Source of the DNA: Penicillus capitatus
Lineage: Eukaryota; Plantae; Chlorophyta
DNA length: 64,000 bases
Reading direction: 5' to 3'
Assembly: GCA_965649825.1 (NCBI GenBank)
Contig: OZ287705.1
Span: forward strand, 700,990 to 764,989
Shown: positions 1-64,000 of the stretch, piece by piece
Layout: each line of letters begins with the position of its first letter
Numbering within the stretch: position 1 is the first letter of the stretch
Notes under the pieces: model-generated
The model's database searches: none
What the model was told of the DNA's origin: nothing
What the model saw: the letters and a program-made list of their open reading frames with translations, nothing else
Translations under genes and position numbers: made by a program

Positions 1-67
1 CAAGGCATGAACTTGATAATAGGACAAGCGTGACCTGCCTTATCAAAGACCGCACCCAGCAGGGGCG

Positions 68-896
68 ATGGAACCGCATCAATACAACCGTGGCTTCGCA
101 GGAAATGCGATGCGACATCCTGGATCTGCTCGCTGGTCGCCGCCACCAAGAGATCACCACCATCCGCGACGACCCCTCTCTCCAAACGTGCATCGCTCTG
201 GAGCACCGCGCCGTTCTCCTCCTCTCGCTCAGCCGCCTCTGAGACGACCTCCACGAGATCTCTCTCCGCCGTTGCGTCCAAGAAGAGATTCCGGAGACGG
301 TGGGAGTTTTCGAAGAAGAGGCGATCCGCCTGTGCGTCCAGACTACTTCAATGGCGAACGAGATCGTCGTCCGTATGGTGGACTGCCGCCTCGTGGTGAA
401 CCCGATTCGGATCGCCGTATGGAGACGTCAGCTGGAGGCCGTTACGGAAATCATCATCGCGATCCGCCGCACTCTCCTGGAAGAAATGTCAAGCGTCCGA
501 GGCACAGTCCTCCTCCAGCTGAGCAACGGTATCCTCTTATGCAAGAGAATTCGTGTGATCTTTTCTATATTGGTTTCCAGTTTTCGCCGTGAACCCGCCG
601 CCACGCATCATCGCAATCTCATGAACTCGCCGCATGAAAATCCGCCGAATCCCGATGTCGCCTCGACCGTCGTCTTGCGACATCCCGAGACCGAGTGCGC
701 CTGGTATTATGTGGATCCACAGGGCAACACACAAGGCCCGTGCACGATCGCACAGTTCAGAAGCTGGCTGAGAACTTTGGCAGAGGATCCTCGATTCGCC
801 GACGAGTACAAGCAGTTCATGTCCGTCGATGTTTGGAAAGAAGGCATGCAGAAAAAACAGCTGATGACGGAACTCTTGCAGCACAACAATCCTTGA
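68..896 (+). CDS. GYF-domain protein
   Basis: The Arg/Pro-rich ORF from ATG 68 splices through a GT-AG intron (529-580) into the frame carrying WYYVDPQGNTQGPCTIAQFRSW, the GYF domain signature. Confidence 0.8.
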
Positions 897-1221
897 TGGA
901 CCCTACCCACCTATCCCATAAATCGATGCTTCTGTGCAAGCGCTCTGGGTGGTTGCACGGCACTGGACAGACGAACCTAACCGCAGCTATTTATTCTCGA
1001 ATCACCATGGACTGGAGACACACACGCTATGGATCGATCACATCGTGGGTCCGTCGGTACGAAAGGACGGTTCAGTTGGGCAACGGACGCTTTACAATTT
1101 TTCTATTCTGTTTTGGAAATACCATCATGCCGCAGGATCTTTCTGGAATGGTGTTTTACGCACGTGGTGGTGATGGCCGACAACACCCTTGTCTCAACAA
1201 CAGCCTTTGTCTTCTGAGCCC

Positions 1222-3052
1222 TTATTCTCGATTGAGGACGTCCTGCATTTTCGTTCTTTCTTGCTGCTCCATAACGAACATCAGATCCGCTTTCAATGCC
1301 TAAGATTTAAAACGGTGCTGAGGTGACGCTAGCATACATGACAGCATTCTGTTCACCACCTTTTCAGCCATCGATATGAACGCTTTCTGTGCGAGCGGCA
1401 GTTGAGATGTCCATTTCCAGAAATCCACAGACACTCTCTGCAGCACACGGATCTCGCTGTCGCTGACTGGAAGGCACACGTGGAGCTGATGAATGTGTCT
1501 CCTCTTCTCTCGTACGCCGGAAGCGCTCACGTGCAGGACGGATGTCACACTGCAGGGAGGATGGAAGAAGGACTCGATTCCCTGTCCTCTCCAATCCACT
1601 AGCATCACGCAATCACGTCATCCAGACGCATAGACAAGACGGATCACGTGCGTTGGGCATCGGCGGCTGACGGTTGGAACCAGTGACCGAAGAGAGGATT
1701 TGCGGGTGTGACCTTCTCATCCAGCAGATGCGACATCAGCAGTCCTTTGTCCAGCGGAACGGTCGTTTCCACTTCGGAGAGGGTCACAAAGGCATCTGAC
1801 AGTTCGGCAAAGGAAGGCATCTCCTGAAAGCCATCCCCCTTCGATGTCATCAGGTTAGAGAGAAACGCACGGGTGATGGGGATGTCTGCGGTTCAGGCCA
1901 GACCCACAGGATCCCATCCTTCTCCAAGACTGGAAGCGATTCGATCCGGATGCCTGGCTGGAAGACGGTGCTCGGCATCTTGACACAACTGCCACTGCTG
2001 TTGTACTCCCATCCATGATAAGGACACGAGATCTGTCCATCGACGATCTTGCCAATGGACAACGGACAGGCACGATGGGCGCATTCGTCTTGAATGCAGG
2101 CTGGTCGACCAGAGGCATCGCGAAACAGTACCCAGGGCTGTCCATAGAGTTCGAACGGCATCAGCACCCCCTCCTTCAGTCTCTACACGGATGGGTAGAG
2201 AGGTGTCAGGGTGAAGGGTGTGTACCGTGGAAAAGGCGGCGGGATACCAGTAGTGCATAATACTGGGTCGAACATCGCTCTCCCTGAAGAGTCATCCATG
2301 TCAGCCACGGCTCACGATACGTCGTTCAGCAAAGCAGTGCTCACTTCGGATCATCGGCTGGGGCATCTTTCAATGCGTCTGCTGGCAGATGCTGTTGGGC
2401 GAGTTCGAGCTGACTCTGTCCAGGATGGACATGATCGAAGATGCGGCGAAGTGTGACCTTCTCACTTTTAGGTACCGAATGTGACTCAGATTGTGCAAGA
2501 CACGTGATTGCGTCGCGTGCAGTTTCTGCAGAGACAGGCAACACGTCGGCGGCGCTGCGTTGCTGAGGCAGTTGGTCACACCTCATGTGCGTCTCTCACT
2601 TCCTTCTGCAGCTCCGTCAGTTCCTTCCTCAATTCCACGACGCTCTTGGACTCCTTCGATTTCGCACTCAATGTCATTTCCACCTTCTGACTCGCTTCTT
2701 CGATGGTCTCTACGGTTGCCGCGGCCTCGCCTTTGACAATGATCTCGTAGACCATATCCCAGTTCTCCTGCTTCTTCTTCAGGTACTCCACTTTTCGACG
2801 CACCTCCCACGGCGAGGCCCCCATGAGACGCTCGTTGAGCACGGCCAGGTCGAGTAACTGATCGGGACAGCGATTCTCTGGTCGGCGATAGCGAATACGT
2901 GGCACACGGCGCAGCCAACTGAAAGGACGGCGCCGGTCATTCGGCCGAGAAGACGGCGTTTTTGCATCGGGGCCGTTCTCTGTGGCTGACAGGCGCCACG
3001 ATCGACGGCCGTCATCGCCACCGAGCCAATAACGCGCAACTGTCCTTGACAT
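1222..3052 (-). CDS. CAO: Chlorophyllide a oxygenase-like Rieske protein (mononuclear-iron His ligands absent), multi-exon
   Basis: It has the chlorophyte CAO N-terminal segment LLDLAVLNERL..PWEVRRKVEYL..NWD, then HYWYPAAF, the Rieske motifs DECAHRACPLS and CPYHGW, FHPPC and HQLHVCLP, and a last exon ALKADLMFVMEQQER. Confidence 0.9.
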
Positions 3053-3161
3053 CTCCCGTCGCCTCGTGTCGTACCAATTCCGTCGAGAATTTTGCTTTTC
3101 GTACCCATCGCTGTCGCTCGGTCACTCACTCGTACGCACGAACGTACACACCGCCGCGCTG

Positions 3162-3539
3162 ATGAACGCTTTTACGTCGCCAGGAGCGGCTATGGTGGAT
3201 GCCTTGGACAAACGCATCCTTATCTCCCTCCGTGACGGCAGCCTCTTTGTCGGGGATTTGCGCTCCTTCGACCAGTACGGCAACCTCGTCCTCGAAAGCT
3301 CCGTGCGACGCGAGGTGGTGGGCAATCAGTTCTGCGACATTCCCAAGGGTCTCCAGATTATTCGGGGCGAGAACATTGTGCTCTTTGGCGAAGTGGATCC
3401 CTATTGCAGCATCGCCCCGGAGCTCATTCGCGTCAGCGAGGCCGAGATTCAGAGGGCCAAAGAGGCAGAGAAGGAACAGGAACGACTGAAGGGAAGCATG
3501 AGGGGTCGTTTCGATTTCTTGGACAGCGTCATGGAATGA
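3162..3539 (+). CDS. LSM1: Sm-like protein LSM1, intronless
   Basis: Sm1/Sm2 motifs LDKRILISLRDG..GDLRSFDQYGNLVL and GLQIIRGENIVLFGEVD. Confidence 0.92.
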   Translation: MNAFTSPGAAMVDALDKRILISLRDGSLFVGDLRSFDQYGNLVLESSVRREVVGNQFCDIPKGLQIIRGENIVLFGEVDPYCSIAPELIRVSEAEIQRAKEAEKEQERLKGSMRGRFDFLDSVME

Positions 3540-3627
3540 ATCGTCGTCCCGCCATCCACGATGACCCATCGATCATCATTTCGATTTAAGTGACAAGACG
3601 TGACGTGCGACAGCGCCCTGAGACGCG

Positions 3628-4854
3628 ATGCAGCACGATCACTTGATTTGGGAGACGATTCGGAAGGGCTGCGCTTTTAAGAGGACATTCAGCGATCGAC
3701 TGTTCTGTCGCAATGAGTATAATGTGACGGGTCTCTGTAATCGAGCGAGCTGTCCGCTGGCGAACAGTCGATACGCGACCGTGCGTGAAGAGCAAGCGCG
3801 ATGCTATCTCTACGTCAAGACCGTCGAGCGAGCGCATTCGCCAAAGAGGCTGTGGACGAAGATAAAGTGCGCGGGGACGGATATCGAGATGGACTGAAAT
3901 GTCGGTGCGGTGGTGGCAGATTGAGTAAGAATTATCAGAAGGCGTTGAAGCAGATCGATGACGCTTTGGAGTATTGGCCGGAGATCACGATTCACAAGAG
4001 CAAGCAGAGGCTGACCAAGATCTTTCAGTATCTGCTGAGAATTCGGAAGCTATCCGAGCTGCCTCGGCCGAAGATTGTGCCCATTCAGCGAAAGTATGAT
4101 AGATGCGAGGGATGGATGTTGGTTCGAGCGCATCTTTGGTGGCAGTGTGGAGAAGGTGGACCGAAAGAGAGAGGCGCGTGCGGAAACGGTGGCGCGGATT
4201 GAGAATGCCATCGAAGATGAACTGCTCAAGCGATTGCAGACGGGGACGTACGGAGAGATTTACAACTTCCCGATGCACGAATACAACAAAGCAACGATTT
4301 CTGGTCACGCTTTTGCAAAGGCAATTAAATGTGTGAGCCAGACGTTGGAGAGAGAAGTGAAGAAGGCGCGCGAAGTGGATGTCGAAGCCGACGAATTCGA
4401 AGAAGCCTACGAGAGCGAAGAAGAAGCTGAAAAAGTGTGATGCCCGCAGCGACTATGTGGTCACACTTTTCTGTGCGATGCAAGGATATCGAGTATCTCA
4501 GCGATGTGGATTTTGAACAGAGCGATGAAGACATGGAAGATCTGGAGCAGATCCTTAAGCCTCGTCGAGCACCAAGTCCTTCAAACGGCGGCGGCGGCAG
4601 TCCCAAAGGTCATACACACGCTTCGCTTGACAAGATACCGAACATATGTGCAGCAGAGAGGCCACCAGATAAGAAGTCTCGCAGAGAGCACCAAAGGTCA
4701 GCTCTCCTGGCAGAGCGCTGCTGTCTTATTAGTGGCGATGCAAACCGTTGTCTGTTTCAGGAAACCGGTAGGAAAGAGAAAGAAGCCAAGAATCGAGCTC
4801 GAGATGGAAGAGGAGTTCTTATCGGCATCGAACGTGCAAACAGGAGAGGGTTGA
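3628..4854 (+). CDS. MAK16: Ribosome biogenesis protein MAK16, multi-exon
   Basis: MQHDHLIWETI..FCRNEYNVTGLCNRASCPLANSRYAT, SKQRLTKI and IENAIEDELLKRLQTGTYGEIYNFP, followed by an acidic C-terminal tail. Confidence 0.93.
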
Positions 4855-4871
4855 GTCTGTTACGGCTAGGA

Positions 4872-5874
4872 CTATTTGCATCGCCGTCTCTTGTTGTTGT
4901 CGGGCATCAGTCTGTTGATCTCATCGATGCTGCATCCGCTCTCTTCGTCCACCTCGATGCCGATCTCTTCGAAGACTTCTTTCTTGTTTCTATTGAGATT
5001 CTCAGACAAGGCGCCCCTAACATCACAGAGCCGCATTCCGTGGAGGAGGGATTAGAGGGGCTGACAGACCAGATTTCGGAGAAGGCAGATTTCCAGTTCT
5101 TCCACTGCCGCAGATGGTCGCGCAGTTTCTGTATGTGGAGATGAATGCAGGCACACAGGCAGACATACGGGAGAGTGTACCTTCTCAGTCGTGGCTCTCT
5201 CTTCTGGCTGCACAACAACGGACTTCTCTTTCAGCGTGGACAGTTTCTCCGTCGACTCTTCCTTCTGCAGAAATCTTTGATTTGTGCCTTCTCTTGTGCA
5301 TAAACTGGCACGTCGCCGCACCTGAGTCTCCAGACGTTGGATTTCGCTCTCGATCTCTTCCAGAGTACGCATCGATTTCAAAGCCGCATACTCTAATAGA
5401 TTATATCCTCGACACAGAGAGGCAGTCAAAAGCGATGTGCCTTTTTTGAGTTGATGCAATTCTTCCTCCTCTTTCTTGACGAGGGCTTTGCTCTCATTGA
5501 CTTGCTGCTTCTTCGCATCCGTCTCCTGTGGACAAATGCCATAGAGATGCGCATCCGTGACGGCGCAGTACGTGCCTCTTTGGTTAGGACGTCTCGATTG
5601 GACTGGATCGGCCAGAAGATGCGCGTCTTGCCAAACTCCTATCGTCGGCAGGCATCCACGTCGCACCGTTTCGTCGACATCACGATAGGCAAGAGCGCAC
5701 TTTGACGGTGATCTTTCCTTTCTCGGCCAGCGTGTCCATCGTCTTCTGGACTTGCGCCTTTTTGATTCCGAACTGCGCCACGAAATCCGCGACGACCTGG
5801 ACACTGAAAGGCCGGTTCTGGTTCTGGAACAGTTCCAGAATGTGATGCTCTGCAGTGGCGGCCTTTCCTGACAT
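4872..5874 (-). CDS. HOP2: Meiotic homologous-pairing protein HOP2/TBPIP, multi-exon
   Basis: Winged-helix start ILELFQNQNRPFSVQVV..FGIKKAQVQKTMDTL, EFGKTRIFLADQS, a coiled coil, and a spliced C-terminus WKNWKSAFSEIWGAL..FEEIGIEVDEE. Confidence 0.88.
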
Positions 5875-5994
5875 CTTTCTTCGAACGATCCAGTTGCTGT
5901 CGTGCGCGACAGAGACCGTGCGTGTCTAAAATGAACGGTGCGCGCACCGGCATTATGTTGTCCAATCGTGCGAAGCGGAGCAGAGCAGTTCAGC

Positions 5995-6968
5995 ATGTCG
6001 CGAGACAACACCGAGATAACGGCAAACGAAGAAGCCGAAGGACCGCCCATTCGACTCGAGAGCATTTCTCATGAGCCTTCTGGAAACAACGCCGCAGGCA
6101 CGGCGCCGCTTATAGACGACGACGGCGACGCTCTCACACAATTAACCTCTGCCGTATCCAGCACCTACACTTCTGTACGCGCTCTTCTTCGACCACTGAA
6201 CATATGAGACGCTCCATTGCTATACAGTTGACGTCTTTTTTCAACCGTGGTGCCACAAATCTGTCGACGGCCACTAAGAAAGTGCGTTGAGTGATGGCAT
6301 CGCATAGGAAAGGTGTGATGTGACGGTCTGTTGTCGTGCAGCTCCCGTCTCAGGTTCAGCATCTGGCAGAGGGCGGAACAAAGGTGGTGTCTGAACTGAA
6401 AGAAGGCTTTACGGATCTCATCACGCAAGGACTGTCGGGATTGGGAGAGGACAAGACGTGGAAGAAACCGAGTTTCGAATACCTTCAGTCGACGTACGGA
6501 ATCGCCAACTCCGACGCACTGATCGCGACGTTCGTCTGCGAAACGAGACAGACCTATGGCCCGAAGCACAACACCTATTCTCCGGACATCCAGGTATGCG
6601 CCGCCATCTGTGGAGGCGATGATGGGACAGCGAGTGAGGAATGCGTCGCCTAGGTGTCGTTCCCGATCATGATCAGCGTGACGAAGGAAGCGTTGTGCTT
6701 GATGGTGGAATCTTCCGGAAATGATCATCCGGGCAAGATCGGACGAGATGAGATCCTCGATCTCACATCCAGTAGACATCTCCTCGATATCTCACACAAA
6801 AGTGTGACCTCTCTAGATGCGGACGCTTCTCTCAGATTGGGCCTGACGGACGATCGGCAACTGGTGCTCTCCGGTTTTGGCGATACGGAATCGAGGGTAC
6901 GCGCATTCAAGTGGATGCAACAGCTCTTGCCCAAACGAACGGAAGATGCCGTTTCTTCCGCGTCCTGA
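5995..6968 (+). CDS. GRAM/PH-like domain protein
   Basis: LIATFVCETRQTYGPKHNTYSPDIQ..FPIMISVTKEALCL resembles the GRAM-like domains of green algae; short GT-AG introns link the frames. Confidence 0.55.
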
Positions 6969-24845: not shown

Positions 24846-27800
24846 TTAAGCTTCGAGTTCTGAGGCGAGTTCGCCCAGCAGATGTCGAGGAGAGTTCAGC
24901 GATGTGTCCACCATCATCATCATTCCTCCGTTCGACATAAGATCGTACGATCGGTGAAATGTCACAGGCTCATCTGCATCGGATTCCACCAATCCCGGAA
25001 TCTCTTTCGGAAGCTTGTCGGCGATCTCTTCAGAATTGTTGTTCAAACACTGCATGGCGACCTGCAACGCAACGGGTTCCGTCGGAGAGTGCTCCACCAT
25101 GGAATACGGGGACGATCCGGCATGAACGGCACCGTAAGAAGGCGTCGAGCGAGCAGGACAGGAAGGCATGGCATAGGGCGGCAGCATATCATAGTGTGGC
25201 GCTCCGGGAACAGAGACAACGGGATAGGCGGGTGGCGGCGGCGGTGGCGGCGCTGCTGGAATCATCAGAGATCCGTAACTGCCTATTGGAGAGTAGGTAC
25301 CAGACATGAACATCATTTGCACAGCAGGACCACTGTCGTGCGCCGTATAACGTGCCGTCTCGCACGAAAGCGGCGAATACAGTCCGTTCTGACTCCCACC
25401 TGCGTTCTTCTCCGGAGATGGATCTGTCAGATCACTGGCGAATCCGACAACGGATCGATCCATCGCCGGCGTCGTATACATATCCGATGGGAGACAGGCG
25501 GATTGGACACTGGTCAGTGGCTCGGAATGTCTCCTTTCGGGTACGGCAGCCGAGAGCACCGGCGAAGCATTGGACCCAAACAGTTCATACTCTGGATACG
25601 ATTCGATCGAGTGCTCGACGGTATGCACCGTGCCAGACGACTCACTGGAGGAGCACTGCATGGCCTGGCTCACACTGTCGCTGTCTGTCTTTGGACACAT
25701 GGAGATGGAGGAATCTTCGGACAGCGACTGTTTGTCAGACTCCAATCTCCTCGAAGCAGCACGTCCAAGAAGGACAGGCGCAGCTGACATCGATGTGGAC
25801 GACTGCAGCGGAGGGAAATCTGGATCTGACAGGGACGGTGCGTGCACCGGAATCGGCAACGGTTTACCTGAGGAGATCTCCCAGGCCGTTTTGGACGTCT
25901 TGCCTTGGCCGGAATCCACGCTGGCGGCTCGCACGATCACAATATTGCCGTTCCGATGGACAACGTCCTTCTCCGCATCGATCCTGCTTTGAATCACGGC
26001 CTTTTCCGAAGGCTTCGGGATCGACGCCAGCACCACCTTCTGCGTTTCTTCCATCTGCTGTGGACTGCAGAAACTGGATACCGGCAGCCTGGACGACGTG
26101 ATGGATTTTGCACTGGACAGCGACAGAGAGCGGTGAGGCAGTGACTTCTGTTGATGTTTCTGTCCAACCTGCTGCCATCCAGCCGCCGTTCCACCATTCA
26201 TCGCATTCTTCTTCACTCCGTTCCCTTCATACAGCGTGCCGCTGTTTCGCATCGCTGGTGGTTTTCTCCGTCCAGCGCTCGCTGTGACCCAGCCTTCATC
26301 ATCTGCCTTTGTTTTGGGCGTGGATCCTGTGAGATGGTCTTTGGCATGTCCATCGCCATCTGCCGGTTTGGATGTCTCTTCTGGCAGGGATTCGATCAGA
26401 GACTGCAACTTTCGGCGAACTTTCCGTGCGTACTTCGCGCCCACGTTCTCCTGTTGTGCGTTCGCAATGGCCTGGTTGATTTTCTCGACGACATCCATCA
26501 TGGCATCGCGCCCAGCAACGCTCCCGATTTCCAGTACAAAGTTCGCACAGTTGACGGCCTCTTCCAGTGCTGCCTTGATGGCACACCTCGTGCTTTCTAA
26601 GGAATCGTCGGGATCGTTCTTTTGAGCATCCGAGAGCTTCTTGAGACTGGAACGACGTCCAGAGTTCTTTTCCGGACTGTCTGGGTCCGTCGATCGATCG
26701 CTCTGTTTCTTGTTCTTTCTTCTGGATGACGATCGTTTGCTTTCGGCCGCCGCCGCCGCTTCCGCCGCCTCCTCTTCTAGAAGCGCCGCCATGTTGGCGT
26801 CGGCGCGCTCCACGCGCTCCTCATAATCCGCTGCCTGTTCAGCAGCCTTGGCCCACGCATCATCGAAGCAGTCTTTCTCAGATTTCCGAGCCGCCTCTCC
26901 ACCCATGTACGCCCTCTTCAGTTTCGCCTCCAGAAGTTTCTGCTGTCGCGTTGTCTTTCCATGCTGCCCACACAGAACAAACGCCGGCGAAGCGCCATCA
27001 ATACCATCGGCCTTTGCCCTCCAATCACAGCCAAGCAAAGCAAGTGTATACATCATCTCCTTCTTATTCGCCATAGCTGCGTGATGCATGGCGGTGCCAC
27101 CAACGCTGTCTCGGCTGTTCACGTCTGCTCCCAAATCCACGAGCTTCAGCACCATGAGCTTGTCGCCGCAACCGGCAGCAAGATGCAGTGCCGTCCGTCC
27201 TTCGTTATCTCTGGCACCGATGTCGGCACCGAGCTCAACGAGCTTCTCGGCGACAGGCAGTAATCTGGATCGGTCCTGTTCCATCTGTGACATCTGCAAC
27301 GCCTCTGTCTTCTTGAGCAGCAACTCCAGTCCCTCTCTTTCCCGTTCAAAATCTCGACTCCACTTGTCCCACTCATCATCGTCATCATCCTTATGTCGGT
27401 GGAGATGATGATGCTCTTTGTCGACCGTCGTCGTCTCGCATCTATAGCTATCCAATGCGGCATCTGGATTCAAAAAGAGCGATCCTGGCCGTCTTCCACG
27501 TGTTGCTTTCCTGAGAAGACTCATGAGTTCCGCCCCCTTCCATGTACTGCATGATCGTGCGTTTGATGGTAAGTGTGCTCTATCCAAATCGTTCAAACAC
27601 ATACTACTCAGCGTCTCTGAGTTGCCTGTGCGAAAACGATGCGTTCGTCAAGAGAGTCCGGTCGTCAGGAAGACTGCCTACCCAGAGTGGCCCATGCAAA
27701 ACCCGTCCGGACAGGCACCATGCCTCCAAAACTGCTAGACTCCTCTCTGGAACCTTTCGACAGTACGGACGACGATACACCGGATCTCCTTAAGGACAGA

Positions 27801-29860
27801 CTGCCGAGTCCCTGAGCACAGACATCCCCATTATGGCAAGCAAGGAATGGAGAGGAGGTGCCGATCCTGCCTGCAAGTTTCCATTGGAGCCTGCCGTGAC
27901 GCCAGACGGTACGTGAGCCAACGCAGAGTACGTTCCGTGTGCTGTGTTCTGCAATGGAGTGCATTCTGACATATCGCGTGCATTTAGATCGGCACCCAAT
28001 TCGACCAGTTTTACAACGGCATCGAGAAATCCGCAGCCGGCTGCCAAATGAAGAGGCGTATTCTGAGCGTTGTCTCGACTGTGTACAGAACATCCAGCCT
28101 GCAGACAGGCCAAGATCAGAAGTGCCATGGACAGAGGCCTCTGCCATGCCTTGACAAGTGGATCAATGACATGCGCCTGACCAAAAGCAGCGGCATAGTG
28201 TAACGGCGTGCTGCCGTCCTTTGTTTGGGAAGAAACGGCAGCTCCATGTTTGATGAGCTTCAAAACAATGTCCTTTCTCCCGGCACGGGCGGCAATGTGC
28301 AGTGGTGTCTCCACATTGCGATCGTCGGTCGCTGGTTTCAACCTTGCCCCTAATTCTACCAGCAGTCCAATAACATCCACGTGTCCCGGACCCTGATCAC
28401 ACGCATTGCTCGCTAAGAGCAAGGTGGGAGAATGGTATGGACCTTCATCGTCGCCAGCTGCAGACATGTCCACCCCTTTGCCGTCTTGACCTCTGTATCT
28501 GCTCCAAGTTCGATCAACTTGGCAACAGCTTCGCACTGTCCGGCATCGGCTGCCAAGTGTAAGGGTGAGTATCCTGCTCTCGTGTCGCACTCTTTTAATG
28601 TGGCACCGAGTTCTAACAGTCGCTCGATGGCGGAAGCTCGGCCGTGCAAGGCTGCATAGTGCAGGGGTGTCCGTCCGTGGCAGTCTTTCACATCGACGGC
28701 GTGATTCAAGTCGACCAATACAGAGATGGCATTGACCCATCCCCAATTGGCCGCCGAATGCAGCGGTGTGAACTGATACGTGTCTCTGCTGTCCACTCGG
28801 CAGCCCAGTTCTGTCACAAGAATGCGTATTAAATCGACCCATCCTTGTTCGGCGGCGACGTGGACGGCAGTTCTGCCCTCTTCACTCTGTACCCATGACG
28901 GACAGCCCAACATATGCAGCTTCCTCACGACTTCGATCCGATTCCATGCAGATGCGCAGTACAACGGCGTGCATCCGTCTCTGTCCTTTGCAGCGGGATT
29001 ACCCCCCAACTGAATGAGCTTCAAGACAGCCGGCAGATGTCCTTCGCCGCACGCAACATGCAATGGCGTCGAACCCACAGAATCTCGAACGTCGACTTTG
29101 GCACCCAGCCGAACCAACGCTTCGATCGATCCCACCTGGACACAGAAAACAACACATCACGCTCTTACGGACGTCGCTTTCGTCGTTACCTGATTGTAGG
29201 CGGCCGCATAGTGTAGAGGTGTCCATGTGTTGGCGCTTTGGCAGTGTACGTCACAGTTAAATTTCTTGATCAGCTTTTCGATATTCGACACCTTGCCTTC
29301 CATCGCTGCAAGATGCAATGCAGACCATCCGAGGATCTGTTGGACAGCAGAGATGCCTGTCTTGCTGGCATCCTCTGTTAATTGAAGCACTTCCTGATTT
29401 CGCCCATCGCACGCAGCAATGTCCCAACCGAGATGGAGAAATCCTAAGAAATCTTGCATGCAGCCACGTCGAGCGACTTCATGCAACGGTGTACAGCCAG
29501 ACGTATCTTCCAGTAGAGCAGCTATCAGCATCGATATCAATTGTACCTTCCATCCCATTCATCTTCTCACTCTCCAATGAGATGATCGCGCACTTGATTT
29601 TGAACAGCTGCCAGATGGACAGGTGTGCAATTGAGTATGTCACGTGAGAGTAAGACAGCAGGTCCTCCGTGTTCCAGCAGTCCCTTGATGATTCCCAAGT
29701 GTCCTCGCATCACAGCCAAATGCAGAGGCGTCCTGCCTTCTGCATCTCTTGCCGTGACGTCCGCCCCCTGCCGAAGCAGTCGGAGTAACTCCTGCTCGTT
29801 TCCTTTGCGTGCAATCTTGTGCAGCAGTGTTGACCTTGGTCCAAGACTGGCAAAAGACAT
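24846..29860 (-). CDS. Large ankyrin-repeat protein, multi-exon, with low-complexity C-terminus
   Basis: Many G(R/S/C)TPLHxAA ankyrin repeats across ORFs 29567-29860, 29157-29558, 28413-29135, 27790-28400 and 24846-27602. Joining them into one gene is inferred. Confidence 0.78.
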
Positions 29861-43000: not shown

Positions 43001-45555
43001 TCTAGCGCCCCCTCTGTGGTCGGTTATGCCGCCGGATTCTGGATCCACGATCTGAAGCGAGTCCACCCTGCCTGCCATGTCTGGGCCGTAGATGCCGCCA
43101 GACTCCTTCAGACAGGCACACTAAGAACAACGGCATGTGCCTTCTGTGCGACGCTGTACCAGGACCCTGTTGGCTTCGAAGTGGAAGCAGTCCGTCAGTG
43201 GACTGCTATCGATCTGTGCTCGACTCAGCTGCCTCCAGTTTGCCACGTCTGATCGCGATTTGCCGCACCCGACGATCACCAGCCCCGGATCCGCGACGAA
43301 CAGGCCGCCGGCCCCGAAGGCGGCTGTGTTCCCGATGAAGGACATGTTGAACAGGTGGAACAGCCGACACGGCTCGATGTCGAGGACATTGGTTTCACAC
43401 TTTGTATCGTCTCCGGTGCTCCAGTTGCCGACGATGCTCACGAACATGCCACCTGCGACGTGGAATGAGGAAGAAGAACGTCTCTCGTGAGCCTGCGTTA
43501 CCTCCGACCAGCGCATCGTTGTCTTCGAAGTGCGTCTCCTGTGTGCTGATGTCTGCCATGGCGCTGTCCGGAACACCGCCGTAGGCCAGACACACCCCGC
43601 CGCCTCCTCCGTTGCCGCAATGCCTGAGAGAGTCCTCGGCGATCACGCTTTCCTCCTCGCTCGATTCTCTCCTGTTGAGACCGGAGACAGACGCCGATTT
43701 CAGTTTCCTGCCGAACGGTGGGATCTGTGCTGACAGATCGGCTCTGAGGTCATCGCCGTCGACCGCGTGGTTCTGCACGAAGCGGCATCGTTTCATCTGG
43801 CACAGACAACCGTGCAATGGGTGGTGCATCGCCTCCAGCGACCGGCCATACCTGAAGCGTGTTCTCCTTCTGTCGGTTCCCTTCCACGAAGACGCCGCCG
43901 CCTGAAGCTGCCTTGTTCCGGAGAAACTCGTTCCACCACTCCGACTTCGCCGATCCGAACGTCACACTTGCAGCAGATCTCAGGGCCGCTCCTCCTCCGT
44001 GCATCGCGACATTGTCGTGGAAACGTGACTCCTCAATGCGGACGTCCCGCGAAGAATCCAGGACGAACAGACCGCCTCCCGCTCTCCTCGCCCTGTTCCT
44101 CTCGAAGTTCACGTTCCTCAGCAGCATGGTCCCGCATCCAGCACACATGAGACCTCCTCCATCCACGGCCGAGTTCTCCGCGAACAGGTTCCGTGTCTCG
44201 GGATCTTCGTTTCCAGAGCCGGCCGACACCGGCTTCGCAGTGAAGCGCGCTCCATTTGTCAGCATCACCGCCCCGCCGAGGCCGGCTGAGTTCCTCCGCC
44301 ATGTCGTGTTGCGCTGCGCGATGCCACCACTGTTCCGAAGAAGTGCCGCTCCTCCTGCCTTTTCGGCTCCGTTCCCGTCGAACATGCATCCATCGATGTC
44401 GATGTTGACCAGATGCACTGTGACAATGTGAAGAGCGCCGCCACTCGCTCCAGCACGATTGGCCTTGAAGGTCGATCGCATGATCTCAAGGGTCTTCAAT
44501 GCAGCAGAGGCAGCGGCAAAGTAGATGGCACCTCCGATGTTCTCCTCCGTATTGCTCCAGACAGTTTCTTCGATGATCGCGGCCTGGTTGTCTTGAAAGT
44601 GGCAACCTTCGACGCGGACGAATATATCGTTCTCAAAATCCGTCAGATCGTTAGCGTCCAGCGTTGCGTATATGGCGCCGCCACTCGTCGCCCTGTTTGT
44701 CAGGAATTCTGTCCCGATCACGCTGAGCCTTTCAACTGAGCTCACAGCAACGGCACCTCCACCATTGCCAGGAGATTTGAAAATGAAGTAACGGTCATGC
44801 TCGATCAACTCTCCGCTTCTTCGGTATACCGTACCATCCAAGCCCCCTTCAATCACTGTGTTGTTGCGAAAGTGAGAGTCGGATATCTCCAATTGCGATC
44901 CTGGGTCCGTCACATAGATGGCTCCTCCTTTTTGATTGGCAAGATTGTTCATGAAATTGGAACGAAGGACTTTGAGAGTGCACTGTTCACCGTAGACAGC
45001 GCCGCCCATATCCGATTTGTTGTCATCAAAAACCGAGTCCCTTATGATCACAGTGAGGGGTATAATGGCCATGCACCACCACTTGGCCAGGCAACCCCTA
45101 GCAGAGATCGCACCACCAGCTGGTTGATAGAGGTCGAAATTTGAGTTGTTGCGAAAAGTCACCCGGTCAAAGACAACACTCTCGTGAGGACAGTTATCAT
45201 TGTCCAGTTCAATCAACACCGCTGGGTGACCCCTGCAGCCTTCAAATGTGAGCGATGTGATCGTGACATTTCGTACCCTAGACAGCACATACAGTGAAGA
45301 AGAGAATGAGAGAAGCCATGGTGGTACTCACGCGATGTTGAGGATGCTGTCATCTTCTGGACAGACCAGTATGGTGACTTCATGAGATTCGCCTCTGAGA
45401 TGTACATCGTGTTGTTCGATCCACAAACTCTCCGACAAGACGAACACATTTCCACTCAAGTTAATGGTTTCGCCAGACTCGGCATTGCTCATCGCTTCTT
45501 TGAGCTCATCCACTGACGACACGTACACACTGCCAGTTTCCAGACCTACAGACAT
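40083..45555 (-). CDS. Large beta-helix (pectin-lyase/Pmp-like GGA..FxxN repeats), Cys-rich, multi-pass membrane protein
   Basis: Repeated GGAIY/GGGxxV plus FxxNxA motifs, Cys-rich CSSCPADRYS..QCPGG..GYWH and CAEGY..LCGSC..GY, then several C-terminal transmembrane helices (WEGVVFIRKALI). The 5' end is uncertain. Confidence 0.8.
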
Positions 45556-54899: not shown

Positions 54900-57800
54900 A
54901 TTCGGCGGTAGAAATCGTCAGGTTTGGCGTATCCGACGGTCAGGGTGAAATTCCGGCTCGGCCAACGGAGGGCCGATAGTGCGCGAAGTCTGCCGTTGAG
55001 GGGTCGTAACACCTCTAAGAGCGTGTTGGGTGCGGATGGCGGGTCGCCCATCCCACCCCATTGGCGTCTTGGTGCGCCCAAGTGCTGGAGCCCAGCGGCA
55101 CATCAGGTGTAACCTGACCTGTGAGTACGATCTGGAAGTGCACGATGCCGCCGGCGACACGGTCGAGCGAGGGTGGGGATGGGTCGGCGGGGTCGAGTGG
55201 ATGCCGACGGACCCTTGATTGGAGCCCGACGGCGGCGTGCTCGGCCTGTGGCGCGGTATTTCCGGATTCGACATTTCGGCAGATTGCGGCCGACGGAGGG
55301 CCCACCGTCGGCAATCTTCGACGCAGACGGGTGCGGGACGCCTAGGGACACGTCGCGGATGCCAATCACCGGAGGCTCGTTTGGCTTTGGGCGGTGTCGT
55401 ACGGGGTTGAAATCGTGGCGGTTACGTCGCATCAGGTGTAACCTGGCCTGTCAGTACGATCTGGAAGTGCACGATGACGCCGGCGACACGGTCGAGCGAG
55501 GGTGGGGATGGGTCGGCGGGGTCGAGTGGATGCGGACGGACCCTTGGTTGGAGCCCGACGGCGGCGTGCTCGGCCTGTGGCGCGGCCTTTCCGGATTCGA
55601 CATTTCGGCAGATTGCGGCCGACGGAAGGCCCACCGTCGGCAGTCTTCGACGCAGACGGGTGCGGGACGCCTCGGGACACACCGCGGATGCCGATCGGTG
55701 CAAGCTCGTTTGGCTTTGGGCGGTGTCGTACGGGGTTGAAATCGTGGCGGTTACGTCGCATCAGGTGTAACCTGGCCTGTCAGTACGATCCGGAAGTGCA
55801 CGATGACGCCGGCGACACGGTCGAGCGAGGGTGGGGATGTGTCGGCGGGGTCGAGTGGATGCGGACGGACCCTTGGTTGGAGCCCGACGGCGGCGTGCTC
55901 GACCTGTGGCGCGGCCTTTCCGGATTCGACATTTCGGCAGATTGCGGCCCACGGAGGGCCCACCGTCGGCAGTCTTCGACGCAGACGGGTGCGGGACGCC
56001 TCTGGACTCGCCGCGGATGCCGATCACCGGAGGTTCGTTTGGCTCTGGGCGGTGTCGTACTTGGTTGAAATCGAGGCCGTTACGTCGCATCAGGTGTAAC
56101 CTGGCCTGTCAGTACGATCTGGAAGTGCACGATGACGCCGGCGACACGGTCCAGCGAGGGCGGGGATGTGTCGGCGGGGTCGAGTGGATGCCGGAGGACC
56201 CTTGGTTGGAGCCCGACGGCGGCGTCCTCGGGCTGTGGCGCGGCGTTTCCGGATTCGACATTTCGGCAGACCACGGCCCACGGAGGGCCCACCGTCGGCA
56301 GTCTTCGACGCAGACGGGTGCGGGACGCCTCGGGACACGTCGCGGATGCCGATCACCGGAGGTTCGTTTGGCTTTGGGCGGTGTCGTACTTGGTTGAAAT
56401 CGAGGCCGTTACGTCGCATCAGGTGTAACCTGGCCTGTCAGTACGATCTGGAAGTGCACGATGACGCCGGCGACACGGTCCAGCGAGGGCGGGGATGTGT
56501 CGGCGGGGTCGAGTGGATGCCGGCGGACCCTTGGTTGGAGCCCGACGGCGGCGTCCTCGGGCTGTGGCGCGGCGTTTCCGGATTCGACATTTCGGCAGAT
56601 TGCGGCCCACGGAGGGCCCACCGTCGGCAGTCTTCGACGCAGACGGGTGCGGGACGCCTCGGGACTCGCCGCGGATGCCAATCGGTGGAGGCTCGTTTGG
56701 CTTTGGGCGGTGTCGTACGGAGTTGAAATCGTGGCCGTTACGTCGCATCAGGTGTAACCTGGCCTGTCAGTACGATCTGGAAGTGCACGACGACGCCGGC
56801 GACACGGTCGAGCGAGGGTGGGGATGTGTCGGCGGGGTCGAGTGGATGCTGTAGGACCCTTGGTTGGAGCCCGACGGCGGCGTCCTCGGGCTGTGGCGCG
56901 GCCTTTCCGGATTCGACATTTCGGCAGATTGCGGCCGACGGCGGGCCCACCGTCGGCAATCTTCGACGCAGACGGGTGCGGGACGCCTCGGGACTCGCCG
57001 CGGATGCCAATCGGTGGAGGCTCGTTTGGCTTTGGGCGGTGTCGTACGGAGTTGAAATCGAGGCCGTTACGTCGCATCAGGTGTAACCTGGCCTGTCAGT
57101 GACTCGCAGAAGTGCACGACGACGCCGGCGACACGGTCGAGCGAGGGTGGGGATGTGTCGGCGGGGTCGAGTGGATGCTGTAGGACCCTTGGTTGGAGCC
57201 CGACGGCGGCGTGCTCGGGCTGTGGCGCGACCTTTCCGGATTCGACATTTCGGCACACTGCGGCCGACGGAGGGCCCACCGTCGGCAGTCTTCGACGCAG
57301 ACGGGTGCGGGACGCCTCGGGACACACCGCGGATGCCAATCGGTGGAGGCTCGTTTGGCTCTGGGCGGTGTCGCACTTGGTTGAAATCGAGGCCGTTACG
57401 TCGCATCAGGTGTAACCTGGCCTGTCAGTACGATCTGGAAGTGCACGATGACGCCGGCGACGCGGTCGAGCGAGGGCGGCAATGTGTCGGCGGGGTCGAG
57501 TGGATGCCGACGGACCCTTGGTTGGAGCCCGACGGCGGCGTGCTCGGGCTGTGGCGCGACCTTTCCGGATTCGACATTTCGGCACACTGCGGCCGACGGA
57601 GGGCCCACCGTCGGCAGTCTTCGACGCAGACGGGTGCGGGACGCCTCGGGACACACCGCGGATGCCAATCGGTGGAGGCTCGTTTGGCTCTGGGCGGTGT
57701 CGCACTTGGTTGAAATCGAGGCCGTTACGTCGCATCAGGTGTAACCTGGCCTGTCAGTACGATCTGGAAGTGCACGATGACGCCGGCGACGCGGTCGAGC

Positions 57801-60800
57801 GAGGGCGGCAATGTGTCGGCGGGGTCGAGTGGATGCCGACGGACCCTTGGTTGGAGCCCGACGGCGGCGTGCTCGGGCTGTGGCGCGACCTTTCCGGATT
57901 CGACATTTCGGCAGACCGCGGCCGACGGAGGGCCCACCGTCGGCAGTCTTCGACGCAGACGGGTGCGGGACGTCTCGGGACACACCGCGGATGCCGATCG
58001 GTGCAAGCTCGTTTGGCTTCGGGCGGTGTCGTACTTGGTTGAAATCGAGGCCGTTACGTCGCATCAGGTGTAACCTGGCCTGTCAGTACGATAAGGAAGT
58101 GCACGATGACGCCGGCGACGCGGTCGAGCGAGGGCGGCAATGTGTCGGCGGGGTCGAGTGGATGCCGACGGACCCTTGGTTGGAGCCCGACGGCGGCGTC
58201 CTCGGGCTGTGGCGCGACCTTTCCGGATTCGACATTTCGGCAGACCGCGGCCGACGGAGGGCCCACCGTCGGCAGTCTTCGACGCAGACGGGTGCGGGAC
58301 GTCTCGGGACACACCGCGGATGCCGATCGGTGCAAGCTCGTTTGGCTTTGGGCGGTGTCGTACTTGGTTGAAATCGAGGCCGTTACGTCGCATCAGGTGT
58401 AACCTGGCCTGTCAGTACGATCTGGAAGTGCACGATGACGCCGGCGACGCGGTCGAGCGAGGGTGGGGATGGGTCGGCGGGGTCGAGTGGATGCGGACGG
58501 ACCCAAGTTTGGCGACCGACGGCGGCGTTCTCGGGCTGTGGCGCGGCCTTTCCGGATTCGACATTTCGGCAGATTGCGGCCCACGGAGGGCCCACCGTCG
58601 GCAGTCTTCGACGCAGACGGGTGCGGGACGCCTCGGGACACACCGCGGATGCCGATCGGTGCAAGCTCGTTTGGCTCTGGGCGGTGTCGTACTTGGTTGA
58701 AATCGTGGCGGTCACGTCGCATCAGGTGTAACCTGGCCTGTCAGTACGATCTGGAAGTGCACGATGCCGCCGGCGACACGGTCGAGCGAGGGTGGGAATG
58801 TGTCGGCGGGGTCGAGTGGATGCTGACGGACCCTTGGTTGGAGCCCGACGGCGGCGTGCTCGGGCTGTGGCGCGACCTTTCCGGATTCGACATTTCGGCA
58901 GATTGCGGCCCACGGAGGGCCCACCGTCGGCAGTCTTCGACGCAGACGGGTGCGGGACGCCTCTGGACTCGCCGCGGATGCCGATCACCGGAGGTTCGTT
59001 TGGCTCTGGGCGGTGTCGTACTTGGTTGAAATCGAGGCCGTTACGTCGCATCAGGTGTAACCTGGCCTGTCAGTACGATCTGGAAGTGCACGATGACGCC
59101 GGCGACACGGTCCAGCGAGGGCGGGGATGTGTCGGCGGGGTCGAGTGGATGCCGGAGGACCCTTGGTTGGAGCCCGACGGCGGCGTCCTCGGGCTGTGGC
59201 GCGGCGTTTCCGGATTCGACATTTCGGCAGACCACGGCCCACGGAGGGCCCACCGTCGGCAGTCTTCGACGCAGACGGGTGCGGGACGCCTCGGGACACG
59301 TCGCGGATGCCGATCACCGGAGGTTCGTTTGGCTTTGGGCGGTGTCGTACTTGGTTGAAATCGAGGCCGTTACGTCGCATCAGGTGTAACCTGGCCTGTC
59401 AGTACGATCTGGAAGTGCACGACGACGCCGGCGACACGGTCGAGCGAGGGTGGGGATGGGTCGGCGGGGTCGAGTGGATGCCGACGGACCCTTGGTTGGA
59501 GCCCGACGGCGGCGTGCTCGGGCTGTGGCGCGACCTTTCCGGATTCGACATTTCGGCACACTGCGGCCGACGGAGGGCCCACCGTCGGCAACCTTCGACG
59601 CAGACGGGTGCGGGACGCCTCGGGACACGTCGCAGATGCCAATCGGTGGAGGCTCGTTTGGCTCTGGGCGGTGTCGTACGGAGTTGAAATCGTGGCGGTC
59701 ACGTCGCATCAGGTGTAACCTGGCCTGTCAGTACGATCTGGAAGTGCACGACGACGCCGGCGACGCGGTCCAGCGAGGGTGGGGATGTGTCGGCGGGGTC
59801 GAGTGGATGCCGACGGACCCTTGGTTGGAGCCCGACGGCGGCGTCCTCGGGCTGTGGCGCGGCCTTTCCGGATTCGACATTTCGGCAGATGACGGCCGAC
59901 GGAGGGCCCACCGTCGGCAGTCTTCGACGCAGACGGGTGCGGGACGCCTCGGGACACACCGCGGATGCCAATCGGTGGAGGCTCGTTTGGCTCTGGGCGG
60001 TGTCGTACGGAGTTGAAATCGAGGCCGTTACGTCGCATCAGGTGTAACCTGGCCTGTCAGTGACTCGCAGAAGTGCACGACGACGCCGGCGACACGGTCG
60101 AGCGAGGGTGGGGATGTGTCGGCGGGGTCGAGTGGATGCCGACGGACCCTTGGTTGGAGCCCGACGGCGGCGTGCTCGGCCTGTGGCGCGACCTTTCCGG
60201 ATTCGACATTTCGGCACACTGCGGCCGACGGAGGGCCCACCGTCGGCAGTCTTCGACGCAGACGGGTGCGGGACGCCTCGGGACACACCGCGGATGCCAA
60301 TCGGTGGAGGCTCGTTTGGCTCTGGGCGGTGTCGCACTTGGTTGAAATCGAGGCCGTTACGTCGCATCAGGTGTAACCTGGCCTGTCAGTACGATCTGGA
60401 AGTGCACGATGACGCCGGCGACGCGGTCGAGCGAGGGCGGCAATGTGTCGGCGGGGTCGAGTGGATGCCGACGGACCCTTGGTTGGAGCCCGACGGCGGC
60501 GTGCTCGGGCTGTGGCGCGACCTTTCCGGATTCGACATTTCGGCAGATTGCGGCCCACGGAGGGCCGACCGTCGGCAGTCTTCGACGCAGACGGGTGCGG
60601 GACGCCTCGGGACACGTCGCGGATGCCAATCGGTGGAGGCTCGTTTGGCTTTGGGCGGTGTCGTACTTGGTTGAAATCGTGGCGGTCACGTCGCATCAGG
60701 TGTAACCTGGCCTGTCAGTACGATCTGGAAGTGCACGATGACGCCGGCGACACGGTCGAGCGAGGGTGGGAATGTGTCGGCGGGGTCGAGTGGATGCCGA

Positions 60801-63800: not shown

Positions 63801-64000
63801 TGTGGCGCGGCCTTTCCGGATTCGACATTTCGGCACACTACGGCCCACGGCGGGCCCACCGTCGGCAATCTTCGACGCAGACGGGTGCGGGACGCCTCGG
63901 GACTCGCCGCGGATGCCAATCGGTGGAGGTTCGTATGGCTCTGGGCGGTGTCGCACTTGGTTGAAATCGAGGCGGTCACGTCGCATCAGGTGTAACCTGG
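54785..64000. repeat. 329-bp GC-rich tandem satellite: 27 full monomers (55103-63986) plus one degenerate edge unit; continues past the window end
   Basis: The anchor CATCAGGTGTAACCTG recurs every 329 nt with no indels. One monomer counted by hand is about 66% GC with a G-rich plus strand. Confidence 0.98.

Follow-up and report, generated by a model that had tools for sequence, protein, structure and literature searches.

The 64,000-nucleotide stretch of Penicillus capitatus DNA analysed here (contig OZ287705.1; hereafter the window) carries near its start a homolog of chlorophyllide a oxygenase (CAO), to our knowledge the sole enzyme known to make chlorophyll b. Outside land plants, the division and regulation of CAO activity are poorly understood. 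As judged from its sequence, the gene is a genuine CAO homolog in which the Rieske centre is intact and the mononuclear-iron site is dead. On balance we favour the view that its product serves as the Rieske, or electron-relay, protomer of a hetero-oligomeric CAO. The initial annotation of this DNA had proposed an electron-transfer-only or regulatory CAO subunit. The CAO ancestry, the intact Rieske centre, the dead iron site, purifying selection and conservation within a clade all agree with that proposal, which our analysis supports in part.

The gene runs on the minus strand from position 3052 to 1222 and comprises eight exons that encode 484 amino acids and end in TAA. The model combines translations in three frames with a three-way alignment of the window DNA and two orthologous loci, L002 and L003. 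All seven introns are GT-AG and measure 43-61 nucleotides (nt), and the spliced frame is unbroken, as first supposed. The features of the gene are as follows.

1222..3052, minus strand: whole CAO-like gene; ATG at 3052-3050, stop codon TAA at 1224-1222; open reading frame (ORF) unbroken in the window, L002 and L003
2582..3052, minus strand: exon 1; a short presequence (residues 1-42, low predicted local distance difference test (pLDDT) score), then the chlorophyte CAO N-terminal helical domain (residues ~43-157)
2466..2525, minus strand: exon 2 (KLHATQSRVLHNLSHIRYLK); the counterpart in the database protein P0001 is KLHFTQSCVLQNLNRIQKLK
2345..2415, minus strand: exon 3, linker (three-way alignment and gene model)
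2226..2283, minus strand: exon 4 (…IMHYWYPAAFST; three-way alignment and gene model)
1871..2182, minus strand: exon 5, Rieske [2Fe-2S] domain (Pfam PF00355, E=2.6e-20)
2015..2083, minus strand: Rieske ligand motif CAHRACPLSIGKIVDGQISCPYH, with Cys254, His256, Cys273 and His276 (translation; columns invariant in the alignments)
1648..1823, minus strand: exon 6, start of the catalytic domain with the degenerate iron motif (three-way alignment and gene model)
1695..1745, minus strand: remnant of the mononuclear-iron motif, GLLMSHLLDEKVTPANP; Asp359 kept, both His ligands lost (translation and alignments)
1589..1647, minus strand: intron 6, 59 nt, GT..AG, phase 2 (57 nt in L002 and L003, with GT..AG kept)
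1360..1588, minus strand: exon 7, PaO-type catalytic core (…HIHQLHVCLP…; Pfam PF08417, E=1.8e-9, 38.1 bits against a cut-off of 27)
1222..1299, minus strand: exon 8 (ALKADLMFVMEQQERTKMQDVLNRE, then the stop codon); Asp464 at 1287-1285, aligned to the third iron ligand (translation and alignments)

The intron position at exon 2 is confirmed by a transcript, L016, aligned to the genomic locus L007. Intron 6 is the sole canonical splice that links frame 0, upstream of its TGA, to the frame of the conserved GIESFFHPPCSVTSV. The stop codon sits at the same position in L002 and L003, where it is TGA, and leaves the protein ~30-40 residues short of canonical CAOs at its C-terminus, without the conserved YDKLAVRYRRWRN helix. 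A scan for sigma-70 promoters and terminators, inapplicable to a eukaryotic gene, returned nothing.

The loss of the iron site is seen directly in the translation. The reverse complement of positions 1745-1695 reads GLLMSHLLDEKVTPANP, and canonical CAOs read GLL.ENLLDLAHAPFTH at this place. When the two are aligned without gaps (against GLL[IL]ENLLDLAHAPFTH) Asn is replaced by His, Asp is kept, and the first and second His become Val and Pro, so that the D-x2-H-x4-H of a canonical CAO is D-E-K-V-T-P-A-N-P in the window protein. A MAFFT alignment introduces a 3-residue gap following VTP and still places no His in either ligand column. These residue changes had been recognised in the initial annotation, although the coordinates given there, 1689-1736, overlap the motif but are off by 6-9 nt (positions 1689-1739 read LMSHLLDEKVTPANPLF). 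Of the 2-His-1-carboxylate site of a catalytically competent CAO (EC 1.14.13.122), consisting of D-x2-H-x4-H and a distal Asp, the bridging and distal Asp alone are left, the latter being the Asp in 'KADL', which aligns with the ligand Asp in the canonical 'GEDL'. Relative to canonical CAOs the catalytic domain has also lost segments of ~13 and ~7 residues.

The rest of the protein retains its CAO character. The Rieske ligands are all present (CAHRAC...CPYHGW at 2083-2015), and the columns of the C-x-H ... C-x2-H motif are invariant in both of our alignments (A1 and A2). The alignments likewise contain the chlorophyte CAO N-terminal domain; on both points, and on the C-terminal Asp, the first reading of the sequence was correct. 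The closest homologs are CAOs: among the 120 matches listed (E down to 1e-121, identity 32-51%), the named ones are CAOs, or are unnamed Rieske-domain or hypothetical proteins with the same Pfam domains, and none of those listed is annotated as PAO, TIC55 or PTC52.

Could the missing ligands result from a pseudogene, or from an assembly or gene-model artefact, with an intact iron motif masked by an error or by an exon that was overlooked? The window sequence is identical to a European Nucleotide Archive metagenome contig (ERZ25074695:ctg340182_20x_l), so that it derives from a metagenome assembly, and the acceptor of intron 6 (TTGGAG/A) is weak, both of which would favour such an explanation. 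Nevertheless, L002 and L003, two contigs from another sample that are ~85% identical to the window, yield intact 484-amino-acid ORFs under the same exon model, so ORFs and splice sites are kept in three independent contigs. All seven introns keep GT..AG in the ortholog compared, with an intron divergence of p=0.26 and indels that are not multiples of three; directly after the motif, the exon of L002 and L003 differs by an in-frame 3-nt indel. Nei-Gojobori estimates between the window and its ortholog gave a synonymous divergence (dS) of 0.374 and a non-synonymous divergence (dN) of 0.041, for a ratio (omega) of 0.11 (Fisher p=1e-35), and the former iron-site region by itself gave an omega of 0.12 (p=2e-6). 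The gene is thus under purifying selection rather than evolving neutrally; neutral evolution would have spoken against the original proposal.

A relative's transcript shows the same loss. The best database match, P0001 (483 amino acids, 51% identity), lies on an intronless 1497-nt JGI contig, identified as the spliced mRNA of a relative because it aligns in blocks to the intron-bearing L007. The contig reads SNLLDEERSPFYP at the motif position, with SNLLDEERSPFYPFRSW...ADQR at the motif's place in P0001. This sequence, together with the in-frame indel in L002 and L003 as against the non-triplet indels of the introns, confirms frame 0 through the motif. The other circumstance in which the original proposal would fail, an alternative exon restoring DxxH..H, was not borne out, as no D-x2-H-x4-H occurs in the six frames of window positions 1-6000, and the introns that flank the motif exon, at 47 and 59 nt, are too short to accommodate a hidden exon. 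Restoration of the His motif through another frame or splice was considered and rejected: frame 2 contains '...RRCPTHV...', which resembles PFTH, and no in-frame GT-AG intron leads to it from LLDE. A pseudogene, artefact or alternative exon is therefore very unlikely.

Selection has not fallen evenly on the protein. Within the clade formed by the window gene and its orthologs, identity is 62-81% in the N-terminal domain, 60-73% in the Rieske domain and 27-43% in the catalytic domain; among canonical CAOs it is the catalytic domain that is most conserved (69-78% identity). Between close relatives omega is 0.05 at residues 60-200, in the N-terminal domain, and 0.12-0.27 in the catalytic domain. 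In the alignments the clade has thus conserved its N-terminal and Rieske domains, while constraint on the catalytic domain has relaxed and this domain has become shorter and lost its C-terminal end. We modelled the protein with AlphaFold2, which returned a mean pLDDT of 79, with values >85 for the greater part of the Rieske and catalytic domains; confidence is low at residues 361-385, just past the dead motif. Long N-terminal helices are predicted at 81-127 and 138-186. The best matches to the model in the Protein Data Bank are alpha3 Rieske oxygenases (DdmC, GxtA/SxtT and KshA), which align over ~290-315 columns covering both domains, and the PaO-type catalytic domain called by Pfam corresponds in the model to the catalytic domains of DdmC and GxtA. 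The catalytic domain is therefore predicted still to fold as that of an alpha3 Rieske oxygenase but to be incapable of holding mononuclear iron: it lacks both His ligands and the C-terminal helix, and ~20 residues are missing from around the site.

The divergence of the catalytic domain raises the question of whether the protein has left chlorophyll b synthesis altogether, as a neofunctionalised, stand-alone Rieske protein serving another redox partner or reaction. The catalytic domain is only 27-34% identical to those of canonical CAOs, it carries the deletions described above and has lost its C-terminal helix, and no partner turned up in our searches, all of which would fit such a change. 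However, close relatives compared with each other still show purifying selection on this domain, it keeps CAO-specific blocks such as HxHQLHVCLP and PPC, and parallel Rieske-only CAO paralogs occur in lineages with a documented split CAO. We regard neofunctionalisation as quite improbable.

A second possibility is that the protein acts as a non-redox regulator or scaffold, mainly through its strongly conserved N-terminal helical domain and catalytic shell, the Rieske cluster being structural. It might, for example, bind chlorophyll(ide), or CAO or light-harvesting complex (LHC) partners, and adjust how stable a complete CAO is or where it is localised. Constraint on the protein is strongest in the N-terminal domain, complete CAOs are found in related orders and genera, and a regulatory role of the N-terminal domain in land plants is reviewed in a preprint by Poirier, Wright & Cvetkovska (bioRxiv 10.1101/2025.02.10.637544). 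Yet no member shows any change in the four Rieske ligands or the motif around them, and the conservation of the Rieske domain nearly equals that of the N-terminal domain. The land-plant degron is moreover poorly conserved in chlorophytes according to the same preprint (10.1101/2025.02.10.637544), so that a regulatory role in algae is itself unproven. A purely regulatory function seems to us unlikely, if less so than neofunctionalisation.

The iron-less gene is not confined to the window. The order MAK16-LSm-CAO-like gene is kept in the window and in L002, L003, L006, L007, L008 and L009, at locus GC contents of 42% to 53%; L006-L009, which represent four further lineages, were found through fragments resembling exon 1. 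In the window the two neighbouring genes are arranged as follows.

3192-3539, plus strand: LSm gene, single exon, head-to-head with the CAO-like gene (start codons 140 nt apart)
~3627-4440, plus strand: MAK16 gene, multi-exon, beyond the LSm gene

The Rieske ligands are kept in all the clade loci (L004, L006-L009), and the three syntenic orthologs that reach the motif (L006, L007 and L009) all have no intact 2-His iron site. At the motif the loci read as follows.

L007: SNLLDEERSLFHP
L006: SNLLDDENSTFRH
L008: SNLMDEE…; the contig ends within the motif, before the second His position
L009: ESLLDTHVPQLF
L004: KNLMDTAHIPFMN; first His kept, second His and distal Asp both replaced by Asn

L004 (Logan SRR23287135, AT-rich, GC 30%) is a more distant member of the iron-less clade and has a catalytic domain of nearly canonical length. 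Its state is intermediate, with DTAHIPFMN at the motif, where the second His position is Asn, and LDENV at the distal Asp, also Asn.

L009 is a Caulerpa-like locus that matches Caulerpa lentillifera g2978.t1. To place the clade we computed a bootstrapped neighbour-joining (distance) tree in numpy, in which branches are long, deep nodes are unsupported and long-branch effects are likely. The core window clade had 100% bootstrap support, and 99% when joined by L009; with the shared MAK16-LSm-CAO-like neighbourhood this identifies the window gene as an ortholog of the Caulerpa g2978 type. Canonical Bryopsidales CAOs (100%) and a Mamiellophyceae-like iron-less group (89%) each formed a separate clade. 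The indel patterns of the two iron-less groups also differ, the Mamiellophyceae-like sequences having insertions where the window clade has deletions, and we found no orthology between the window gene and the Rieske-only CAOs of Mamiellophyceae. Independent subfunctionalisation had been suggested from the sequence at the outset. The separate clade and the distinct indels agree with an independent loss, at the level of a distance tree with unsupported deep nodes, and on this footing the iron site was probably lost independently of Mamiellophyceae. That the gene is simply the Micromonas CAO, on a low-GC outlier chromosome of Mamiellophyceae, was rejected, since its best CAO matches are non-Mamiellophyceae and the MAK16 gene in the window is closest to that of Bryopsis sp. 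KO-2023 (68%) and to an Ostreobium-style EukProt model (67%), with other green algae at ~61%. Small introns and a jump in GC content at 55 kb in the window might have been signs of such a chromosome; the jump is explained by a 329-bp satellite.

How might a CAO protomer without catalytic iron contribute to chlorophyll b synthesis? Electron transfer in alpha3 Rieske oxygenases crosses between protomers, from the Rieske cluster of one to the iron of its neighbour. This inter-protomer transfer is also described in the preprint (10.1101/2025.02.10.637544). The gene product would be a nuclear-encoded CAO paralog with a working Rieske [2Fe-2S] cluster and the chlorophyte N-terminal helical domain, probably targeted to the plastid to judge from its short Arg/Ser-rich presequence, the sole indication of its location. 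We propose that it joins a hetero-oligomer with an iron-bearing CAO protomer, which would be encoded elsewhere in the genome, and acts there as an electron relay to the partner's iron. Such a relay has been demonstrated for the two-gene CAO of Micromonas (Kunugi 2013). Because electrons run between neighbouring protomers in the alpha3 arrangement, relay would be the only catalytic contribution open to an iron-less protomer. The window paralog has what is expected of one half of a two-gene CAO, in that its Rieske ligands are intact, its iron ligands are lost and it is kept under selection.

Several observations weigh against an electron-relay protomer. No second CAO was found within the 64-kb window, and a canonical-exon query, look-ups of candidate fragments and one scan of JGI metagenomes, with P0005 as the query, gave no partner that matched the window in composition. 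The canonical CAO loci retrieved from sibling metagenomes belong to other organisms, because their tetranucleotide correlations with the window are ~0.4 (0.36-0.46), compared with 0.945 for L002 and L003. The complete CAOs Ostreobium quekettii and Bryopsis plumosa possess, both of them other Bryopsidales, have both centres, and a complete enzyme needs no extra Rieske protomer. It is also the N-terminal domain and not the Rieske domain that is most constrained, which would fit a regulatory role as well, and the transcript support comes from the relative represented by P0001 and not from the window organism.

Two sets of candidate partners were examined and set aside. The first, L005, L010, L011-L015 and L017, consists of complete CAOs that come from other samples and correlate with the window at r ~0.36-0.46; the second, the streptophyte-like L020 (r=0.71), is likewise a complete CAO and has no introns.

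In a variant of the relay, the iron-less protein would not be one half of a neatly divided enzyme but an additional, dedicated protomer combining with a complete two-centre CAO, as found in Ostreobium and Bryopsis, to give asymmetric heterotrimers. The conserved N-terminal domain and Rieske centre would then tune the rate of chlorophyll b synthesis. We hold this arrangement to be possible but rather doubtful. Siphonous green algae have chlorophyll b-rich, low-light antennae, and if such heterotrimers exist this regulatory layer could be tied to them.

Whether the partner of the putative relay protomer is a Rieske-less CAO or a complete one is the question that the gene raises. The locus alone leaves the picture of chlorophyll b synthesis unchanged. 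It does provide a second, probably independent case, beside that of Mamiellophyceae, in which to ask how trimers of Rieske oxygenases cope when their protomers share out the work. What is new here is the full-length structure of the Bryopsidales-type iron-less gene, the selection acting on it, its synteny and breadth across lineages, and the shift in constraint between its domains; its neighbourhood is conserved across several divergent lineages of siphonous-alga type.

Elsewhere in the window we noted the tandem satellite already mentioned and three ORFs.

55101-64000: 329-bp tandem satellite, running off the end of the window; at least 27 copies, 95% matches, ~66% GC, strong positive GC skew, and the cause of the composition jump at the window end
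43750-45288, minus strand: 512-amino-acid ORF with Chlamydia-PMP repeats and a right-handed beta-helix
24846-27602, minus strand: ankyrin-repeat ORF
27790-28842, minus strand: ankyrin-repeat ORF

Compared with canonical chlorophyte CAOs (Chlamydomonas reinhardtii P0022, Ostreobium quekettii P0006 and P0031, Bryopsis plumosa P0015), to which it is 33-45% identical overall, the window protein has the same order of N-terminal helical domain, linker, Rieske domain and PaO-type catalytic domain, with the Rieske motif and HxHQLHVCLP in common. It differs in the absence of both His ligands, in the ~13- and ~7-residue deletions, in the missing YDKLAVRYRRWRN helix and in a catalytic identity of ~32%. 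The two Ostreobium proteins are 36-38% identical to it, which, with the 67% identity of MAK16, speaks against an origin of the window in Ostreobium quekettii. Both come from the Ostreobium quekettii EukProt proteome EP00803, in which they are complete CAOs with both metal motifs; CAO is given as undetectable in the Ostreobium quekettii genome in the preprint (10.1101/2025.02.10.637544). The alpha3 Rieske non-heme iron oxygenases DdmC (dicamba monooxygenase, 3gb4/6vsh), GxtA/SxtT and KshA, its best matches of solved structure in both sequence and fold, align with the window protein in their Rieske and helix-grip catalytic domains, but have the 2-His-1-carboxylate site, do not have the N-terminal helical domain and are 17-23% identical.

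CAOs made by two genes are a known kind, reported from Micromonas (Kunugi 2013) and from Caulerpa and Bigelowiella (10.1101/2025.02.10.637544). In Micromonas pusilla, as in other Mamiellophyceae, CAO is reported to consist of two polypeptides, one of Rieske type and one of iron type, and in Micromonas neither is active without the other (Kunugi et al. 2013, J Biol Chem 288:19330); MpCAO activity is reported in PMC9615114. The window gene resembles this system in that one CAO paralog has kept its Rieske centre and lost its iron ligands, and would be expected to function only with an iron-bearing paralog. Unlike the window protein, Mamiellophyceae-like Rieske-only proteins (e.g. P0306, ~385 amino acids) have no aligned N-terminal chlorophyte domain (15% identity over few residues). 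A search of the whole sequence library showed that both kinds of degenerate CAO are widespread, with Rieske-only CAOs in Botryococcus, in Lotharella and among Mamiellophyceae-like sequences. Rieske-less CAOs, with an intact iron motif and with Rieske ligands lost or deleted, were seen in the Acetabularia acetabulum transcriptome (P0398) and in Auxenochlorella protothecoides (P0284); to judge from Acetabularia, split CAOs may go back further in siphonous ulvophytes than the Bryopsidales alone. The preprint suggests that chlorarachniophytes received their CAO pair from a Bryopsidales endosymbiont (10.1101/2025.02.10.637544). The Rieske-only CAO of the chlorarachniophyte Lotharella globosa (P0289) fell outside the Bryopsidales-type iron-less clade and joined the Mamiellophyceae-like clade weakly (bootstrap 48), a placement that does not obviously fit inheritance of the pair in this way, with support too weak for a conclusion.

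The nearest counterpart is that of Caulerpa lentillifera, whose CAO pair (g2978.t1/g8266.t1) is listed with that of Bigelowiella natans by Poirier, Wright & Cvetkovska (bioRxiv 10.1101/2025.02.10.637544). Supplementary Table 1 of that preprint assigns the 'Fe-binding domain' to g2978.t1 and the 'Rieske domain' to g8266.t1. In EukProt g2978.t1 (P0048) has the Rieske motif and no iron motif, and Rieske is its only precomputed Pfam domain; from these sequences the two labels look swapped. P0048 is the closest named relative of the window protein, with 50% identity over the part that its model covers. The Caulerpa-like locus L009 reads LLDTHVPQLF at the motif, with one displaced His, whereas the window protein has none. 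The annotation of g2978.t1 ends past the Rieske domain at 335 amino acids, while the window gene and L009 run on through the degenerate catalytic domain. The comparison shows that the 'Rieske-only' CAO gene of Caulerpa is no truncated annotation but a full-length gene, with a degenerate catalytic domain and a highly conserved N-terminal domain, that is maintained by selection.

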